NCBI GenBank assembly: GCA_028826165.1
Contig: JAPDFW010000088.1
Coordinates: 1 to 64,000 of the forward strand
Length of the DNA: 64,000 nucleotides
Direction of reading: 5' to 3'
From: Anaeramoeba ignava BMAN
Lineage: Eukaryota; Protista; Anaeramoebae
The notes beneath the pieces were generated by a model, which saw only the letters and a list, made by a program, of their open reading frames with translations, searched no databases and was not told the origin of the DNA. A program made the position numbers and the translations under genes. This document shows, in pieces, positions 6,316 to 38,509 of this stretch. How positions within the stretch are numbered: the stretch's first letter is position 1; each line of letters starts with the position of its first letter.

Positions 6316-9300
6316 ATGAATAATAATAACAATAACAATAACAATAACAATAACACAGAAAACTTAAAAGAATTATACAAATTATCAATCAAAGAAATTG
6401 ATAATATTTTACTTAAAGAACAATCACTTAATTTTTCAAAAATTTATCAAACTCAAAAACAATTTACAGATTTTACAATTTATTGTAAAGAAAAGAAGAA
6501 AGAAAATGAAAATGAAAATGAAAATGAAAATGAAAATGAAAAAAGAAACAAAAAAAGAAATAAGAAAGAAGATGAGAGAGAAAACCCAATAAAATGCCAC
6601 AAAATCATTTTAAATGCAAGAAGTTCATTTTTTGATTTATTTACAAAAGAAAAAGGAGAAAATCAAATTTATTTTAAAGAATTCGATTTTGAAATTGTTG
6701 AACCAATAATCAAATATATTTATGAAGGTGAAATCAATATTAATCATCAAGAATTCGAAAAATATTTTAAATTTGCTGATATAATTAAATTAGAAAAATT
6801 AAAAATCAAAATTGAAAAAGAAATTGAACCAATTATTAATCAAAATAATATATTTGAAATATTTTCAAAATCAAAAGAAATTCAATCAGATTTTCTTTTA
6901 GAAATTTGTCAAAATTTTGTTCTTAAAGCCTTCCCCGCAAGCAAAAATATTTTCTTTTACTTACACTTACAAAAAATTAAGTGTAATCATTCTCAAAAAA
7001 TTGAGAAAAATGATTAATAAAAGCAAATATATCTAACTTTCGAAGCTTATCAGGTGATTTTTTTTTCAAAATATCCATTTTAGGAAATGATATACTCAAG
7101 CTGCTGCATATAAATAATTAGAAGATTAGATTTAAATTTAATTTTCATGCTCAAGAATGAAAAAAATTATTAAAATTTTATTGAAATCAATAATTTCTAT
7201 TGTTGCAGAACTTTCAGAATCTGGTCCTATTTTTTTCAACATGCTTAATTTATAGATTATTTTATGTTCTTATTTAGGTTCAAATAAATTCAAAAACTTT
7301 CGTGTTTTATAGAAATGGGATGCTTATTTGTTGATCAAAAAATTGGCATTTTTTCAAATTTTTATATCAACTCATTGATCATTTATTTTGTCGATTTCAA
7401 CCATTAATCTTCTTTTATTTTTATTTTTATTTGTTTTTTTCTCTTACTTTTTTTTCTTATTTGTTGACAAACACTATTTAAATAAAAAAAAATATTTTAT
7501 AAAAAAAAAATAACAAGATCACAAAACATTTTTCTTTTGACATTTTTTTAAAATTTTTTTCTTTTTTTCTATTTTCTTATTCTGTTTTATCTTTTTATTT
7601 TTTTTTCAAATCTTTGTTTTAATTCGTTTTTTACATGAAAGCAATAACTTGTTATATTTGTGGGAAAAAAAATCCCTAAAGCCCAAGTTCCATCCAAAAA
7701 TGAATTATTTTTGAAATTAGAATCTACTCCAAGAAGAAAAAGTAATAAAATATGTAATCGGTGCTATAGAGATAATTTAAAAATGGTATATTTTACTTAT
7801 TTTGCTTCTTTTTAATTTTTTCTCATTCCATCTTTTTCAGAAAAAATTTATTCAGGAAAACAAGGATATCAAAGAAGAAAATAGCTGCCTCAAACAAGAA
7901 TTAGATTATTTAAAAGAGTTGGTTCAACAACAAAAAAAAGAAATCAATCACCAATTCTCAATTTATAAAGAAGTCAAAAAACAATTGAAAACAACTCTCT
8001 CTTGGGTGAATATCCTCAATGAAAAATGTGACAGCATCGCTAGAACTGAAATGGAACTTAGAGAAAATCTGTGTGAAGTTCAAAAGGAAAAAGAAAATTT
8101 GAAGAATCAACAAATCACAATCCACTCACATTTGATGTATCAACTTACAAAAGAAAATCAAGATTTAAAAACACAAGTGGAAAAAAATCAGATTAAAATT
8201 GGGAATTTGAGAGATAGTGTATATTATTGGAAAATTACTAAACCGAAAAGAAAGGAAAAAAAGAAGGAGGAAGAACAAATGAAAAGAGATTCACTCAAAA
8301 ATCTCTCTCAAAATCAAACCTCACTTGATGGTGAAAATGAAAACAATCAAAATGAAAACAATCAAAATGAAAACAATCAAAATGAAAACAATCAAAATGA
8401 AAAGGGAAAAGGAAAGGAAAAAACAAAAATTGAATCTAAATCAATTAAAAAATTCAGAAAACTATATGAAAACGATCGCAAAATGAGATCTGCATTTAAT
8501 ATTGGGACAAAAATTGTAGGAATCAGTATTTCAAAATTTTATAGATTCCTCAACTTATTTGAAATCAAGACACAAGATGGGTTGCAAGATTATTGCGATG
8601 AAGTTAAAATCAAATTAGCTCCAATAGTTAATAGTATGGCAGAATCAATTCTAGATTTATCTGCAGAGGAAGTAGAACAATCTACTGATCCTTCTTCAAC
8701 ACAAACCATGGAACATATGAAAAATCACTTTATATCTGATAAAGATATTGATAAAATTGCTAACTCCTCAAGAAAATTATTTATTAATAAAGAATTGACA
8801 AATTCATCTTCCCTTCTAGACCTCAAAGAAAAAATATATCAATTAGTCATAAGTAATGAAAAAAAAAATTCAATCGAAAGAAAAGATCAGAACAAGAATA
8901 ATTCAAATCAACAGATAGAGAATGAATCTCAACCAGAAATCGATTCCACTAAAAAAATAGATTCGATTTTTTCTCATGATGTAGCATATTCACATCGGAA
9001 TAACCGAGCTGCAGATGCATGCGCAATTTTTATTGAAGCGAACACAAAATTTAACAGAATTATACATTACCAAAGAATGAGCTCAACTTCAACCATCCAT
9101 CCACAAAGTTTAGAGGGATTTTTGATTCCCAAAGGAATACAAAAGCTTTCGGAGAAATACAATATCCTTGCCACGGTCCATGACCAGAATACCTCATCTA
9201 AAGTTAAACAGTGTTTCCCGAATATCATGCATTTACTAGATCCCTGGCACGTAACTAGATCAATTCGAAGAAGATACAACAAACTTGTTAACAAATTCTG

Positions 9301-12300
9301 TGGATCAAATAAAAAGAAACGCTCAAAAGAAGAAAGCGAGAAAATGCGAAAAAAAAAAGAACATTTGATGTCATGGAAAGAATCTATAATTTTCCATTTT
9401 CTAAGATGTGCAAAATCTTGCCAAGGCGATATGACGACTTTATTATCTGAATGGTTTAGATATTTTCTCCACGCTAAAGGCGATCATTCCCTTTGCCCAA
9501 AAAATAGTCCATGCACAAAAAATGAAAATTCAAACGAAAATAAACATCCTGAAGATAAAAAAATTACAAACAAAGAGGAGGAAGCATTCTTCAAAATGAT
9601 ACTTTCTGATTTCACCATTATTAAAAAATTAATTTTTTGTAGATATTTTTTATCCACAAGCTACAACGAATCCTTTTTCAGCACTTTAAACGGTTATCGC
9701 GAAAAAATAAGTCATTTTAAAAATTATAATCTTCTTTATCAACTTGCCATCATTGATTGGAACCAAAATAGGAAAAAAGAAAATGAAAAGGAAATAAATT
9801 TAGGAAACCAAGAAAACGAAATTGAATTCAATGAAAAAAATGTATTACAAGAAAATCAAAAAAAAGAAAAAGATATGGAATGGCAAAAAGAATTACTTCA
9901 TCTCTCTTTACCAGGTATCTTTCAAAAAAGTACATCTTATTTGAAGAATTTAACTCTCTCAAGAATCAAAAAAAAGAAAAGAAATAGCTCAGAAGAAATT
10001 GTCCCTCCTCAAAAAGAAAAAAAAAGAAGTAGAAAGTCACCAAAAAAAGAAGCAAGTTTAAAAACAAAAAAAAACTTGATCTCAACATTTTTATTAAGTA
10101 AGATTCAACCCAATTTGTTTGATTTTGAAAACTATTCCTTGCTTCCTACATTTCAAATCCATTTCAAAGATGCTTTGGAGATGTTAAATCCAAAAGAAAC
10201 TCATAAACAAACTCAAAAGGAAACAGAGAACTCATGTCCCAATATACATGATTTGCACATTTTTTCCAATCAAAATCCTTCATTGTTATCAAGAAAAAGT
10301 AAAATCGATAATAAAAATGACGTTCCCATTCAAACAAAAACAAATAATCATAATGCTATCCAAAATATTCAACTTCCCAAACCCAGAGAAATTCAACTCC
10401 TTGAGGAAGATTATATACACAACAAAAGAGAAGAAATAAAGAGATTTCTGAATGATTTAATTGATAACCCCATTAATCTGTATCTTCCAAGTGGGATACA
10501 AGGATCATGGTGGAAAAGATGGGACTTAGAGCAAATGCTGAGTCTCAAGATTTGTCTATTGGATTTTAGTAAATTTTTTATATCCTCAATATCAAAATGA
10601 TGTAGAATTTACCAGATTAGATTTTGAACCCACGATCCAAAAATTACATCAAGAATACAAAGATTTTCAAGCATTCAAGAACAGAAGAAATCAAATTTAT
10701 GAAGATTTTGATAAATTTTTAGAAGCTTCAAAAAAAAGTTATCCCAAATTGATTGACCATTTCAACAATTTCGTTGAAAATCGACCGAGAATGAACAAAA
10801 TAGATGTCTTTTCTAATTGGTTGATGTCTCCAGAACTCAGAAACCAAATTGAATTGTTTGAATCGTTAATAGAATTTGAGAAAGGAGTGGATGGTTGGAA
10901 GCAATTAAGAACAATATTATTTAATTTTGAAGAATGCGAAAGATTGATGAAATGGGATGAAAAGGAACCTTTAGATATTATACCAATAATATATTTGACT
11001 AATCATCATTATGTGTGTTTTTTGATTGATAAACAATTTCATAAAATCTATTTATATAACACTATTCCAAAATATGCAAAAAAGGAAGTAGAAGATATGG
11101 GAAATCATATAAAACAGTATATTAAATGGCGCATAAATGAAAATTATGAAATTGAAGAACTAGTCAAGAAAAAAATCCAAGAAGATGGCGCCCAATGCGG
11201 GAATTCAGTACTACTTTTTTTATGGTTGATTTTCACTATTAAAATTCCTATTGAAAAAGCAGTGGAAATTATCAACCATTCACTTGCTGTCAGATTTAGA
11301 TTCATGATCCTAAAATGTATTTGTAAATCAACCAGAATTCAATTATTATTCAAATCACCAGAATTCATTCAAGATATAATACAAAATCACCCCAAAAAAT
11401 ATCGGCACAATTCATTTTTTCTTTTTTGATGAATCTCTCTAATTTTTAAACGTTAAATTGATTTTTTTTCAAATCATTTTTTCACATCTTTTATTTTTCA
11501 AAATCTTTTACAAAGAAAAATAAAGAATTTTGTTGAAGGAAATAATTGAATTTTGTATTGGATTCAGTTAAAATTAATATATTTCAAAATGAAAAAGAAA
11601 AATTTGAAAAATTGATCAAAACAATTATCTTTTGAATTCTCATAAATTTCTTATTCATATCATTAATTGAATTTTTCTCATCAATTTCTTTCTCAATAAT
11701 CAAGTTCAGTTGTATGAAACAGAATAGAAAAAAGAACCAAAATGAAGAGATATTCAACAAAATTTTCCAAAAGATAAAAATTTGTTTGAAAAGTTTTGGA
11801 TTATGAAATTATGGAGATTGTCCCAAATAAAAAAAAAGTAGTATTTCTTTTTCTTTTTCCAAATAGAAAAAATTGATGTTTTTTTGATCTATTCTTTAAT
11901 TATTTTTTTTAATAAAAAGGGGAAAAATCAAATTTTTTATTTTTTTTTATTTTTTTTTCAAAGTGACAGCTGTCACTTCAAAAGGGGAAAAAATGACAAA
12001 ATATTTTTGCTTGCGGGGAAGGCTTTAAAATTTCCAATAATCTTCTTGAAAAAAAAGAAATTTCAAAATTAAAAACAAATGAATTCTTAAATATTATTGA
12101 TTTGTTAATTTCAAATTTTGGAAGAGATCAAACAAATTTAATTCAAGAAATCATTATTGAATGGACGAAAAATAATCAAGACAATTTTAATCAATCTTTT
12201 CAAGAATTAGAATTAAATTCAAATTCAAATTCAAATTCAAATTCAATCAAAAAAATTATTTATGAAATTTTAATCAAAATTCAAGAAAAGAAACAAATGA

Positions 12301-14988
12301 CAAAAAAAGAAATTCAAAAAATTGAAAAAATTCAATTATTTCAATTATTTCCATCTGATTTTTTTGTTGATTTATTAGATGAAAAAATGGGAAAATTAAA
12401 ATCAATTTCAGAAAATTTAACACAAAAAGAAAATGATGTAAATGAAAAACAACAAAAAGTAAAGGAAAAAGAAAATGATTTAAATCAAAATAAAATTGAA
12501 TTAGAAAAAATACAACAAAAAATACAACAAAAAGAAAATGATTTAAATCAAAATAAAACTCAATTACAAAAAAAAGAAAATGAAATAAATCAAAAACAAC
12601 AAAAAGCAAAGGAAAAAGAAAATGAAAATTTACAAAAAGAAAATGAATTAAATGAAAAACAACAAAAAGTAAAGGAAAAAGAAAATGAAAATTTACAAAA
12701 AGAAAATGATTTAAATGAAAAGGAACAAAAAGTAAAGGAAAAAGAAAATGAAAATTTACAAAAAGAAAATGATTTAAATGAAAAGGAACAAAAAGTAAAG
12801 GAAAATGAAAATGAAAATTTACAAAAAGAAAATGAATTAAATCAAAAACAACAAAAATTAGAAGAAAAAGAAAATGGTTTAAATCAAAATAAAACTCAAT
12901 TAGAAAAAAGAGAACAAAAAATACAAAAAAAAGAAAATCATTTAAATCAAAAGGAGCAAAAAGTAAAGGAAAAAGAAAATGAAAATTTACAAAAAGAAAA
13001 TGATTTAAATCAAAGCAAAATTGAATTAGAAAAAAGAGAAAACAAAGTTAGAATAAAAGAAGAAAGAAAAATACAAATTAATTTACAAAATTTTCGAGAA
13101 CAAAAAGAAGGAAAAATTCCTGGTAATTTATTCACTAAATCTAAAATTAAAATCTAAAATTAACATCAAAATTAAACAAAAGAAATTAAAGTTGAAGAAG
13201 ATATTAATATTGAAAAAACAATTCAATGGATGAAAGAATTTCAATTAAATGAAAAAATTCAACAAAATGGATGTTTTATTTTACATAATTTTTCTGTTGG
13301 AGATAATGGTAAAATATTTTTATCCATTTAAAAATTTTTTTGAAATGGGCAATTTATTTGTTAATTCAAATACCAAATAAAAATAAAAAGAAAATAAAAT
13401 TGAAATTAGAAAAAAAGAAGGAATTTCAACAATAATTAAATCAATGAATAATTTCCCAAATAATCAAGATATTCAAAAATATGGAATTTGGGCTTTAAGT
13501 AATATTTCTTTGAATGATGGTAAAATATTTTTATCAATTTAAAAAACTTTTTGAAATAGACAATTTATTTATTAATTTAAATACCAAATAAAAATAAAAG
13601 AAAATCGAATTGAAATTGGAAAAAAAGAAGGAATTTCAACAATAATTAAATCAATGAATAATTTCCCAAATAATCAAGATATCCAACAAAATGGAATTTG
13701 GGTTTTAAAAAATATTTCTTTTAATAATGGTAAAATATTTTTATCAATTTAAAAAACTTTTTGAAATAGACAATTTATTTATTAATTTAAATACCAAATA
13801 AAAATAAAAAGAAAATAAAATTGAAATTGGAAAAAAAGAAGGAATTTCAACAATAATTAAATCAATGAATAATTTCCCAAATAATCAAGATATTCAAAAT
13901 TATTCTTGTCAAATTTTTATTAATATTTCTGTAAATAATGGTAAAATATTTTTATCAATTTAAAAAACTTTTTGAAATAGACAATTTATTTATTAATTTA
14001 AATACCAAATAAAAATAAAAAGAAAATCGAATTGAAATTCGAAAAAAAGAAGGAATTTCAACAATAATTAAATCAATGAATAATTTCCCAAATAATCAAG
14101 ATATTCAAAAATATGGAATTTGGGCTTTAAGTAATCTTTCTTTTAATAAGAGTAAAATATTTTTATCAATTTAAAAAACTTTTTGAAATAGACAATTTAT
14201 TTATTAATTTAAATACCAAAAATAAATAAAAGAAATTCGAATTGAAATTCGAAAAAAAGAAGGAATTTCAACAATAATTAAATCAATGAATAATTTCCCA
14301 AATAATCAAGATATTCAAGAAAATGGAATTTGGGCTTTAAGTAATCTTTCTTTTAATAATGGTAAAATATTTTTATCAATTTAAAAAACTTTTTGAAATA
14401 GACAATTTATTTATTAATTTAAATACCAAAAATAAATAAAAGAAAATCGAATTGAAATTCGAAAAAAAGAAGGAATTTCAACAATAATTAAATCAATGAA
14501 TAATTTCCCAAATAATCAAGATATTCAAAAATATGGAATTTGGGCTTTAAGTAATCTTTCTTTTAATAATGGTAAAATATTTTTATCAATTTAAAAAACT
14601 TTTTGAAATAGACAATTTATTTATTAATTCAAATCCCAAATAAAAATAAAGAAAATCAAATTGAAATTGGAAAAAAAGAAGGAATTTCAACAATAATTAA
14701 ATCAATGAATAATTTCCCAAATAATCAAGATATTCAAGAAAATGGAATTTGGGCTTTAAGTAATCTTTCTTCTAATAATGGTAAAATATTTTTATCAATT
14801 TAAAAAATGAAAATTAAAATGTATTAAATAAATATTCTCAAATTTATAACAAAAAAAAACAAGAAAATCAAAAAGAAATTAAAAGATTAAATGGAAGTGA
14901 ATTAATTAAAAAAGCAATGAATAATTTCCCAAATAATCAAGACATCCAGAAAAAAGGAAATTGGGCACTTGAAAGATTAGAAAAATAA
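6316..14988 (+). CDS. BTB-BACK-coiled-coil-ARM-repeat protein, disrupted by a transposon in exon 1. Coding segments: 6316-6926 + 12029-13122, 13183-13308, 13391-13519, 13601-13729, 13812-13940, 14023-14151, 14233-14361, 14443-14571, 14652-14780, 14864-14988
   Basis: BTB motif (FTDFTIYC...IKCHKIILNARSSFF). Removing 6927-12028 joins ...EICQNFVLK to ISNNLLEKKEISKL... in frame with ORF 12102-13157. Downstream phase-1 GT-AG introns join 43-aa ARM-like exons (ENKIEIRKKEGISTIIKSMNNFPNNQDIQKYGIWALSNIS). Stop TAA at 14986-14988. Confidence 0.85.
6927..6953 (+). repeat. Left terminal inverted repeat (27 bp)
   Basis: AGCCTTCCCCGCAAGCAAAAATATTTT, exact reverse complement of 11998-12024. Confidence 0.97.
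7635..11429 (+). CDS. Transposase-protease fusion (~1,230 aa): N-terminal CxxC..CxxC Zn finger, coiled coil, Kolobok-type DDE transposase, C-terminal Ulp1/SENP-like peptidase. Exons 7635-7785 (one extra A in a poly-A run), 7841-10568, 10606-11429
   Basis: Exon 1 reads MKAITCYICGKK(fs)IPKAQ...KICNRCYRDNLKM, then intron GTATAT...TTTCAG 7786-7840 in frame. Transposase motifs: SHDVAYS (D 8978), SLEG, VHDQN (D 9182), LDPWH (9239-9250), W..SIIFHF..C...C.G, H..GDH..C, STSYNESFFS (E 9668), LAIIDWNQN. A 37-nt intron GTAAAT...TGTAG (10569-10605) joins it in frame to ORF 10749-11429, which has NHHYVCFLID...YLYNT...IQEDGAQCG. Confidence 0.8.
11998..12024 (-). repeat. Right terminal inverted repeat (27 bp)
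   Basis: AAAATATTTTTGCTTGCGGGGAAGGCT followed directly by TTAA. Confidence 0.97.
13309..14800 (+). repeat. Tandem exon+intron duplication units (~210 bp) of the ARM-repeat region
   Basis: Seven 129-nt exons separated by ~80-nt near-identical introns GTAAAATATTTTTATCAATTTAAAAAACTTTTTGAAATAGACAATTTATTTATTAATTTAAATACCAAA...TAAAAG. Confidence 0.95.
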
Positions 14989-28857: not shown

Positions 28858-30823
28858 ATGACAACAACAGATTCTTGGGTTGATGATGATTTTGAATTTG
28901 ATGCTCCTATGTTTGTTGATTTTAAACAAATGAGTTCAAATGATCCAACTGTTGATAATTGGTTTGAAAATTTCCAAAATGAAAAAACACCAGAAAAAAA
29001 GAAAAATCCTTCACAAAAAACAAATCTAACACAACAAAAAAATCAATCGCATATAAAGAAACAAAAGGTGAAAAATTCTCATTTTCCAAAAAATCCACTT
29101 TTGACTCCCAAAAGTTAAATCAAATAAAAGGATTAATTCTTCATCAATTAAATCAAGAAATGAAACAATTAATGGTTATCAAAAAAATCAACAAGAAATC
29201 AATAAATCTCAATTCAAATCAAATTCCAAAAGAAAACCTATTCTGAAAAGATTGACTAAAAAAAATGATAAAAATATTAATGATGATAATCAAAGAAAAA
29301 AACCAAATCTTCATCAATTTCTCCAACGAAATTGTCCTTTTTTTCAAATTCCAGATTCTGATTCTTCAAAAAATAATCAAAAAAAGGAAAATAAGCCTAA
29401 AATCAATAATCAATTAAAAACTAAACCCTTATTAAAAAAAAACACAACAAATAACAATTTGAATAAAAAAAGTTCAATTAAACCAAGTAGAAAAACCAAT
29501 CAAACAAAACAACCATTTAATAATAAATCATTAATGAGAAGAATATCAGTAAATCAAAATCAAAATCAAAATGAAAATCAAAATGAAAATCAAAATGAAA
29601 ATAAAGAAAATATACTTAAACCAAGTAGAAAAACCAATCAAACAAAACTACCATTTAATAATAAATCATTAATGAGAAGAATATCAGTAAATCAAAATGA
29701 AAATTCAAATGAAAATGAATCAAAATCAAACAGAATAATAAATCAATCCAAATTTTCAAGTTCAATTAAACCAAAAAAAAAGGAGTCAATTAATCTCTCA
29801 CAACAAATTAAACCAAGTAGAAAAACCAATCAAACAAAACATCCATTTAATAATAAATCATTAATGAGAAGAATATCAGTAAATCAAAATCAAAATCAAA
29901 ATGAAAATTCAAATGAAAATCAAAATGAAAATAAAGAAAATATACTTAAACCAAGTAAAAAAACCAATCAAACAAAACTTCCATTTAATAATAAATCATT
30001 AATGAGAAGAATATCAGTAAATCAAAATGAAAATTCAAATGAAAATGAATCAAAATCAAACAGAATAACAAATCAATCCAAATTTTCAAGTTCAATTAAA
30101 CCAAAATCAAACAAATCAAACAGAATAACAAATCAATCCAAATTTTCAAGTTCAATTAAACCAAGTAGAAAAACCAATCAAACAAAACTTCCATTTAATA
30201 ATAAATCATTAATGAGAAGAATATCAGTAAATCAAAATGAAAATTCAAATGAAAATCAAAATGAAAATCAAAATGAAAATAAAGAAAATATACTTAAACC
30301 AAGTAAAAAAACCAATCAAACAAAACTACCATTTAATAATAAATCAATCCAAATTGAGAAGAATAAACCAAGTAAAAAAAAAATCAAAAATTCAAATGAA
30401 AATGAATCAAAATCAAACAGAATAACAAATCAATCCAAATTTTCAAGTTCAATTAAACCAAAATCAAATAAATCAAACAGAATAACAAATCAATCCAAAT
30501 TTTCAAGTTCAATTAAACCAAGTAAAAAAACCAATCAAACAAAACAACCATTTAATAATAAATCATTAATGAGAAGAATATCAGTAAATCAAAATGAAAA
30601 TTCAAATGAAAATGAATCAAAATCAAACAGAATAACAAATCAATCCAAATTTTCAAGTTCAATTAAACCAAATCGCAAAAATCAATCTAAATTAAAAAAG
30701 AAAAATCAAAATGAAAATGAAAAAGAGAAAGAAGAAGAGAAAGAACAAAACTTTACACCCAGTTTACAAGAGTTGATTCAAAGATTAACACAAATTGAAA
30801 AAAAAAGAAATCCACTTTTTTAA
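28858..30823 (+). CDS. TPX2-like protein: N-terminal Aurora-A-binding-like motif plus basic internal repeats; probable intron ~29068-29130 (phase off by 1 nt)
   Basis: The N-terminus DDDFEFDAPMFVDF...VDNWFE matches the TPX2 pattern [YF]x[YF]DAPxxFxxF...DxWF. The second ORF has 7 KPSRKTNQTKxPFNNKS(LMRR) repeats. The splice junction does not resolve cleanly. Confidence 0.6.
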
Positions 30824-36121: not shown

Positions 36122-38509
36122 ATGAACAACAAAAAAGAAACACAAGAAAGTCAAGAAAATCAAGAAATTGAAGACGTAGAAGACAACCAAAAGATTGAAC
36201 AAGTTAACACACAAAAGGAAGAAATGAAGGAAGATTTGATGAAAAACCAAGAAGATGAAAAAAGTGAAGAAACACCAAAAGAAGAAGAAAAAAATCAAGA
36301 AGAAAATTCAACTGAAAAAAATCAAGAAGAAAATTCAACTGAAAAAAAAGAAGAAGAAAAAAATCAAGAAGAAAAAAATCAAATTGAAAAAAATCAAGAA
36401 AAAAATCAAGAAGAAAAAAATCAAATTGAAAATGATCAAATTTCTCATTCAAATAAAATTGCTATCAAATCTGGAAATGGTGATGTTATTTATGAAGATA
36501 CAAATGATTCTGATGAATATTTTCCTGCTCAAACTCAAAAACAAACATCAAATCAAAATCAAAATCAAATTCAAAATCAAATTCAAAATCAAGTTCAAAT
36601 TGAAAATCAAAATCAAAATCACATTTTCATAAATCAAAATCAAAATCAAATTAAAAATCAAAATCAAAATCAAAATCAAAATCAAAATCAAAATCAAAAT
36701 CAAAATCAAAATCAAAATCAAAATCAAAATCAAAATCAAAATCAAAATCAAAATCAAAATCAAAATCAAAATCAAAATCAAAATCAAAATCAATTTCTCA
36801 ATTCAGAAGATTACGAGACAAAAGAACAACAAAATCGAACAATTAATCAACAAATCCAAACAAAAGATCAAACAAAAGATCAAACAAAAGAATACATTTC
36901 CTTCAATGTAGTATTTTTGGATCAAAATTTACAAATTATTCAATCAAGCGTTTTTCTTTCAATAGCAAACAATGAAATCAAACTTCAACTTAACAATAAC
37001 CAAATTTTCCAAAATCACATCACAGAAGTCAGTGTTGCTCCAAACCTCAGCAATCCATTCCTTACTCGTGTAGTTTTCTTGCAAAATCAAAGTTTCATTC
37101 TTGCATTCCAATCAATCGAGGAAAAAAACTTCTTTTTGAAAATGTACATTGAAAATTCAAGAATTCAATTACAAAAAAAACAATTAGAACAAGAAACAAA
37201 ATCAAAGAAGAAAAAAGGCTACAAAGTAGAAATTATCAATCCATATCATCAAAAACTCAGCGATGCCAAGCTTATTCTTGAGAACAACAAACTTACATTG
37301 CTTACAAAAGAAGAATTATCACCAAATGTTTTCCAAAAAAACGTCAGAATCAAAAGAAAAATCGAATATCCAAATGTTTTGATTTTTTCTTCTACAAAAA
37401 AATCTTTTTTCGATTGTTCAAATGATAGAGTTTACGTTAGATTTCCAAGTATAAGCAGTTCAAATGAATTTGTTCGTGATTTCCAACTATTAAAATCTTC
37501 TCAATTGAATTCAAAACCAATCGCAAATCAAAATCAAAATCAAAAGAAAATTTCATCAGGAATTCAATTTCCGATTCAGTTGTATTCCTCAAGTTATGTT
37601 ATTCAAGTAGCAACTCTTGAAATTGGGCAAAGAATGGTCAGAATATTTGATCAAAATGGATCACGATTATCCCAAATTGACAAATTGAAGCTTGTGGAAC
37701 CAATCAATCCAGAACTTGGAATTTTTGAGATGATGTTTTTAAACGATAATTCTTCACTCAAATTTTCTTTTTCCAATTTCAACGATGCTCAAGCGTTTCG
37801 ACAACTTTACTATTCTTCATTAGGATCAAAGAACACATCAAATCCAAATCCAAATCCAAATTCAACACAAAATCAAAAGCAAGATTCAAATATTCGCTAT
37901 CAAATTGATGTTCTGAATAACAAATTCCAAAAAATCGATCAAGGAAAGGTTGTTTTTAATAAGAAATTCATCTCAATCTACACAAAGTATGAAAAATATC
38001 AAAATTTAGAAAGAAAAAAATTAGAGTTCAAAATTATTACTGTTGATAAAAAAGTGATTGAAGTTATAATTTCTCGCAAAAAAGAAGGATCCAAAAGATT
38101 TTGCACAACAAATGAAGATTCAATGATAATGCGTTTCAAAACACCAAAAGAGGCTGAAATGTTTCTTTATTTCGAAGAAGGAAAAGAAACCCCAAATCAA
38201 AATCAAAATCCAAAATCCAAATCAAAATCCAAATCAAAATCAAAATCACAATTTTCTGTTATGATGCTTACAAAAAATAAACAAGTTATAAAGGCTCAAA
38301 TAAACTTGAACAATGAATCTATGGCGATAAGTTTTGCTGGACTTGTTGTGTATTCATTTTATCACCAAACCTCTATTTCTCATATTCCAAGTTTTCCTCG
38401 AAATTTAAGATTAAATTTTGAAAAGGATAATTCTCATTTTTACATTGAATTTCCAAATGCTGAAGAAATTAATAATTTTATTGAAGAATTTACTAAAAAA
38501 TTCATTTGA
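36122..38509 (+). CDS. 795-aa protein: acidic/NQ low-complexity N-terminus plus about five tandem PH-like domains
   Basis: Long intact ORF. Five beta-rich segments each end in a PH/RanBD-like C-terminal helix motif: LAFQSIEEKNFF, VRFPSISSSNEF, FSFSNFNDAQAF, MRFKTPKEAEMF, IEFPNAEEINNF. Confidence 0.75.
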   Translation: MNNKKETQESQENQEIEDVEDNQKIEQVNTQKEEMKEDLMKNQEDEKSEETPKEEEKNQEENSTEKNQEENSTEKKEEEKNQEEKNQIEKNQEKNQEEKNQIENDQISHSNKIAIKSGNGDVIYEDTNDSDEYFPAQTQKQTSNQNQNQIQNQIQNQVQIENQNQNHIFINQNQNQIKNQNQNQNQNQNQNQNQNQNQNQNQNQNQNQNQNQNQNQNQNQNQNQFLNSEDYETKEQQNRTINQQIQTKDQTKDQTKEYISFNVVFLDQNLQIIQSSVFLSIANNEIKLQLNNNQIFQNHITEVSVAPNLSNPFLTRVVFLQNQSFILAFQSIEEKNFFLKMYIENSRIQLQKKQLEQETKSKKKKGYKVEIINPYHQKLSDAKLILENNKLTLLTKEELSPNVFQKNVRIKRKIEYPNVLIFSSTKKSFFDCSNDRVYVRFPSISSSNEFVRDFQLLKSSQLNSKPIANQNQNQKKISSGIQFPIQLYSSSYVIQVATLEIGQRMVRIFDQNGSRLSQIDKLKLVEPINPELGIFEMMFLNDNSSLKFSFSNFNDAQAFRQLYYSSLGSKNTSNPNPNPNSTQNQKQDSNIRYQIDVLNNKFQKIDQGKVVFNKKFISIYTKYEKYQNLERKKLEFKIITVDKKVIEVIISRKKEGSKRFCTTNEDSMIMRFKTPKEAEMFLYFEEGKETPNQNQNPKSKSKSKSKSKSQFSVMMLTKNKQVIKAQINLNNESMAISFAGLVVYSFYHQTSISHIPSFPRNLRLNFEKDNSHFYIEFPNAEEINNFIEEFTKKFI

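Follow-up and report, generated by a model that had tools for sequence, protein, structure and literature searches.

The first important finding of this study is that a DNA transposon of Anaeramoeba ignava BMAN, located at 6927-12024 (5,098 bp; hereafter family 1) of a 64,000-nucleotide window (GenBank assembly GCA_028826165.1, contig JAPDFW010000088.1, positions 1 to 64,000, forward strand), belongs to the Kolobok superfamily and encodes a DDE transposase fused to a predicted clan-CE cysteine protease. The second is that domains of this type are found on transposases of several superfamilies in the same genome. In the sequence-only reading of the window that we followed up, transposase and protease were joined by a hidden intron; the sharing of an Asn-type protease across superfamilies is the more interesting result.

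The element is delimited by its ends, its copies and its empty sites. The arms 6923-6953 and 11998-12028 are 100% complementary, which corresponds to a 27-bp terminal inverted repeat (TIR) plus TTAA, and the termini, AG...CT, fit the Kolobok 5'-RR...YY-3' rule. There are five full-length copies in the genome, 97-100% alike by BLAST and 98.2-99.8% when compared ungapped, all with the same left TIR sequence and each flanked on both sides by TTAA at a different insertion site. On C107 there are five paralogues of the left flank (97-98% match), and the three that were read have one TTAA followed by sequence 95-96% like the right flank, and so are empty sites; contigs of sequencing runs contain the corresponding joint, 6922->12025. 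Arm comparison, copies and empty sites thus bear out the TIRs, TTAA target-site duplication (TSD) and ends proposed from the sequence alone. Family 1 is a recently mobile element, and we propose as the best explanation that it is probably an autonomous DNA transposon with one two-exon gene. The window copy interrupts a host BTB-domain gene, the two halves of which share one frame (Pfam BTB, E 1.4e-13). A connection to BTB/Cul3 is circumstantial: the element lies within a BTB gene, and insertion targets were read for the window copy alone. At C107:35699 and 37412, a full element copy and a close paralogue of that gene are separated by about 1.5 kb. Immediately inside the right TIR is a perfect 18-bp palindrome, with a looser one in a similar place in family 2 (below), which is a possible transposase-binding site.

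Assignment of the transposase to Kolobok is supported by several lines of evidence. Kolobok elements are characterized by a TTAA TSD, RR...YY ends, a C/DxxH signature and a Zn finger between DxxH and E (PMC9587614), and family 1 has the TSD, termini, DDE signature and finger. D8978, D9182, DPWH (9239-9248) and E9668 are conserved or near-invariant in about 100 homologues, and the His/Cys finger consists of H9470, H9485, C9494 and C9512, the last of which is kept in 98 of 101 homologues. The motif strings agree by eye with those in Data S5 of PMC9587614, the nearest being trichomonad families; our transposase tree comprised unnamed homologues only, and the named Kolobok references were compared by motif reading. 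The model of the transposase core (predicted local distance difference test, pLDDT, 89) has an RNase H-like integrase/transposase fold, with a best Z of 11.2. MULE/MuDR elements, which have a variable TSD of 8-11 bp, are ruled out by the fixed TTAA, weak Pfam Mutator/MULE matches being seen in homologues only. Similarly, piggyBac shares the TTAA TSD and has 5'-CC...GG ends and a DDD triad, and is ruled out by the AG...CT ends and by E as third residue. Pfam gave no match for either the transposase or the protease domain of the window copy, and word-based protein searches gave matches confined to A. ignava itself. The nearest outside transposases (P0008 and P0009) are on short contigs, without a protease. 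Elsewhere in the genome, C1:85725-89090 holds pieces of a more distant Kolobok-like transposase, with no protease seen in that stretch, adjoining an ORF (open reading frame) that resembles by eye a Crypton/DUF3504-type tyrosine-recombinase relative, and a MULE-like transposase fragment (FLDETF, by eye) lies near a decayed Kolobok piece at C35:504209-507553.

The C-terminal domain is predicted to have the clan-CE fold, with its His, Asp/Glu/Asn, Gln and Cys in order. The sequence-only reading had named H11007, N11058, Q11178 and C11196 as the active-site residues, and all four are at these positions and invariant in five families that are 18-38% identical to family 1. The sequence weakly matches Simkania/Chlamydia deubiquitinases (E 0.007), and its profile matches ChlaDUB1 at E 2.4e-5. 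With the structural model, all 50 Foldseek matches listed are clan CE (best E 1.5e-4), and the top 19 VIA matches are CE-clan or CE-like chains of bacterial, viral and eukaryotic origin (Z 6.6-8.2), which agrees with the fold read from the sequence. The spacing between the W motif and the His is 158-160 residues rather than 58-68, that is about 100 additional helical residues. The Asn is compatible with catalysis, since pS273R of African swine fever virus (ASFV; PMC9920524) is an active CE protease with a His-Asn-Cys triad, and the domain is very likely an active protease using a Cys-His-Asn triad.

How the two domains are joined is where our results depart from the sequence-only reading, which fused the two ORFs by removing a 37-nt intron. 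Its arithmetic holds in the window copy, where the segment has GT...AG ends and its removal restores the frame; the supposed intron offsets indels of that copy. Relative to the window, each of the four other copies gains a G after 10539 and lacks two T at 10564, a net loss of one base that merges the two ORFs into a single frame with the reading QMLESQDLSIGLVNFLYPQ. The same three changes recur in Logan contigs from four runs of two studies (X1, X2, X4 and X5). A run X5 contig covers 10478-10737 without splicing, and among the joints listed for the contigs of the four runs, none bypasses 10569-10605. Furthermore, the segment encodes a helix just after an Ulp-type W/L-x-x-x-D-I/L motif aligned in five families, so splicing would take out this conserved region, and in family 2 both domains lie in a single frame. 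We therefore rejected the intron as coding sequence and give it next to no chance. Since copies and contigs are continuous without it, the fusion is real and simpler than had been proposed.

The window indels are most likely assembly errors. They lie in or beside homopolymers, private homopolymer indels are present in every family-1 copy, and the assembly comes from nanopore data polished with short reads (10.1101/2023.03.03.530753), which we expect cannot correct near-identical repeats. That the window copy is instead genuinely frameshifted, a dead copy, is improbable on these grounds, although Logan contigs merge copies and lose rare variants; the nature of the family would be unaffected. 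In another copy the frame is lost through an additional A at 10437, and the NCBI gene is split there. More generally, the NCBI models KAJ5079675.1, KAJ5079676.1 and KAJ5071396.1 have the ORF split at assembly indels or joined to a neighbour; one split half is named "deneddylase 1", and a neighbour-fused model of 1,947 aa is named "aardvark". Short "hidden introns" read from repeats of this assembly can thus be homopolymer errors.

The upstream CxxC...CxxC exon fared better. It is frameshifted in the window copy, where two A are missing at 7664; once these are added, exon 1 reads openly for 51 aa and contains CYIC...CNRC. Copies L002-L004 are open, the run contigs have the two A, and family 2 has the exon and its donor position as in family 1. 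The NCBI model KAJ5079675.1 begins with exon 1 and splices out 7786-7840, and one contig of run X5, which is possibly RNA, stops exactly at 7785; no spliced joint over 7786-7840 was seen in the run contigs. Together, these comparisons support 7786-7840 as a 5' intron. The full product would be about 1,246 aa, by arithmetic only, and exon 2 encodes in order a coiled/low-complexity N-terminal part, the DDE core, a basic linker and the protease.

The fusion is not restricted to family 1. Family 2, on C68 and C69, has a transposase core 48% identical and a protease 37% identical to those of family 1, with both domains in a 1,534-aa frame on C68, and its right ends read ...GGGAGAAGGCT|TTAA. The family-2 elements (C68:366667-372177 and C69) are about 5.5 kb long, with imperfect TIRs and long Asn/Glu/Lys repeats in the ORF, and a decayed relative lies near C68:465746-470365. 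In total, nine transposable element families from three superfamilies have a clan-CE-type domain at the transposase C terminus. Besides Kolobok, these include DDE_Tnp_4 (PHIS/IS5-like) transposases in the families on C117, C74 and C35/C98, a C134/C137/C126 family with a DDE_Tnp_4-type transposase upstream of the protease frame, and pogo-like transposases of the DDE_1 type on C20/C114, C1 and C41. The PHIS/IS5-like loci are C117:142196-, C74:178996-, C134 (two places), C137, C126, C35:574420 and C98:18492. The right ends of the C117, C74, C134, C137 and C126 elements, the only ends read, are followed by ANT, a target like that of Pangu (PMC4482050), and several of them finish in ...CC; left ends were looked for without success. 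The pogo loci (C20:8105, C114:172949, C1:785183 and C41:8872) have a domain that scores with Peptidase_C48, with Asn, but Ser in C41. All nine families retain the Cys, His and oxyanion Gln, with the rest of the domain drifting and overall identity at about 20%, and the third residue is Asn in eight and Ser in one; a host SENP8-like gene (C109) has the usual Asp.

These proteases fall into type A, with the insert, in the two Kolobok and three PHIS families, and type B, in the pogo families and one PHIS family, a split with support of 100/99 in a tree with long branches and no outgroup. Because the four PHIS transposases, 45-50% identical to one another, carry both types, these data point to an exchange of protease modules between transposon superfamilies within the host. 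A broader proposal may also be entertained, although we lean somewhat against it: the His-Asn-Cys deconjugases would form a clade confined to transposons, passed among the three superfamilies much as anti-defence cargo is among bacteria, and would serve as a shared counter-defence against one ubiquitin- or SUMO-dependent silencing or degradation step.

What might the protease do for the element? In the mechanism we propose, a single protein would combine a Cys finger, a DDE transposase, a linker and a clan-CE cysteine protease, and the latter would remove ubiquitin or a ubiquitin-like modifier (Ubl; SUMO or NEDD8) from the transposase or from nearby chromatin or repair proteins. This deconjugation would protect the transposase protein, or ease silencing or repair. 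Judging from the modelled fold and its closest matches, the protease is probably a ubiquitin/Ubl deconjugase aiding the element, SUMO being ranked no higher than ubiquitin or NEDD8 as substrate. The host genome has at least 127 matches to ubiquitin-like domains and, on C75, several long arrays of polyubiquitin; it also has a zf-MIZ gene and three genes with Piwi domains. For an anti-silencing role, these are context, not proof. Several observations weigh against a deconjugase that aids the element. The protease was modelled with middling confidence (mean pLDDT 60, from five sequences). The window copy has no match at all to Pfam Peptidase_C48 and, with Asn instead of Asp, was rejected as a member of that family proper; family 2 scores 19-21 bits, around the cut-off of 20.7. 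Only one of 103 Kolobok homologues has any protease, so transposition does not require one. The CE fold by itself does not point to one substrate, given that its viral members cleave polyproteins. Finally, the element was found in none of the runs on record as RNA. A search for a SUMO E1 gave no match anywhere, controls included, and is uninformative.

An active protease with a job unrelated to Ubl removal, whether self-excision from the transposase, cleavage of a host defence protein, or acetyl transfer (some CE enzymes are acetyltransferases), is the less likely reading, though it deserves consideration. It would fit the giant-virus proteins among the nearest atlas clusters and the Asn triad, which pS273R, a viral processing protease, also has, and the 100-aa insert may alter the substrate site. 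However, the top sequence and structure matches are deubiquitinases and deSUMOylases, and the translated family-1 frames of the window contain no Gly-Gly or Ala-Gly, family 2 having one unconserved Ala-Gly, so the self-processing module suggested in the sequence-only reading is disfavoured. Less likely still is a non-catalytic domain or neutral cargo, perhaps only a ubiquitin/Ubl tether: the change of Asp to Asn (Ser in one family) and the strong divergence from host SENPs would suit it, but not the retention of Cys, His and oxyanion Gln in nine otherwise poorly conserved families. Our preferred reading thus remains the deconjugase. Scans of metagenome and viral contigs with the protease alignment found no relative, such blanks being no proof of absence.

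Comparison with known systems highlights similarities and differences. Kolobok elements, including the parabasalid Kolobok-TV/TrFo families and KolobokD/E/H/P/Kol0, have the same TTAA, RR...YY ends, DxxH DDE signature and His/Cys finger (PMC9587614). A protease is nowhere mentioned there, the accessory domains described being limited to KolX, DEDDh, PD-D/ExK, His-Me and RecQ, whereas the A. ignava element carries a predicted clan-CE protease as its accessory domain. In Ginger1 and Mutator, Ulp1/OTU proteases are fused to the transposase, with a proposed role in transposition (PMC2836005), and a Ulp1-like protease is likewise C-terminal to the DDE transposase; these elements differ in superfamily and TSD, and the A. 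ignava domain in its Asn for Asp, 100-aa insert and score below Pfam C48 detection. Another parallel is P0055 (Logan ERR1352942, 1,518 aa), with a Kolobok-like DDE core and a C-terminal Peptidase_C48 (E 3.8e-23). This protein, known without its element ends, has a canonical His-Asp-Cys, no insert and a transposase outside the Anaeramoeba group (long branch), and its protease is probably an independent capture. At its N terminus are an OTU-like motif (by eye) and a Cys-rich segment. Simkania SnCE1, ChlaDUB1/2, SseL, Ulp1/SENP, SENP8/DEN1 and ASFV pS273R share the fold and the H...Q...C order with the A. ignava domain, at 10-22% identity for the known clan-CE proteases, and pS273R also has Asn as third residue. 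A literature search found no relevant paper on Kolobok with Ulp1 or a protease, and none on Zisupton with "SUMO protease", within incomplete coverage (without Repbase Reports and most subscription journals). Ulp1/OTU-transposase fusions were already known; the A. ignava element adds a lineage with a protease to Kolobok.

Table 1. Features of the family-1 element and its insertion site (window coordinates)
Feature	Position	Strand	Evidence
Interrupted host BTB-domain gene	6316..13157 (halves 6316-6926 and 12029-13157)	+	Pfam BTB; same frame; C107 paralogues
Left TTAA TSD	6923..6926	.	Arm comparison; single TTAA at C107 empty paralogous sites
Left 27-bp TIR, begins AG	6927..6953	+	Identical in five copies
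Exon 1, 51 aa, putative Zn finger CYIC...CNRC	7635..7785	+	Copies; run contigs; family 2; KAJ5079675.1
GT-AG intron, phase 0 (supported)	7786..7840	+	Family 2 position; NCBI splice; X5 contig end at 7785
Exon 2, one frame of ~1,195 aa, interrupted in the window copy (indels at 10539 and 10564)	7841..11429	+	Copies; contigs; family 2
Kolobok-type DDE core with His/Cys finger (9470-9512)	8954..9808	+	~100 homologues; model; PMC9587614 Data S5 motifs
Predicted clan-CE protease domain with ~100-aa helical insert	10520..11426	+	Profile, alignment and model comparisons
Proposed 37-nt intron, rejected as coding	10569..10605	+	Other copies; run contigs; five-family alignment
Subterminal palindrome, 18 bp, perfect	11961..11978	.	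Sequence reading
Right 27-bp TIR, ends CT	11998..12024	-	Arm comparison; copy comparison
Right TTAA TSD	12025..12028	.	Arm and copy comparison; empty sites

Elsewhere in the window, the ORFs 29252-30823 (523 aa) and 36122-38509 (795 aa) have no Pfam match.

The purpose of Ulp1/OTU proteases on transposases is a question that has stood since the Mutator and Ginger1 reports, and the nine A. ignava families offer a ready assay panel with which to address it. The presence of such a domain in nine families of one small genome, in two types that cross superfamilies, suggests strong host-specific selection.

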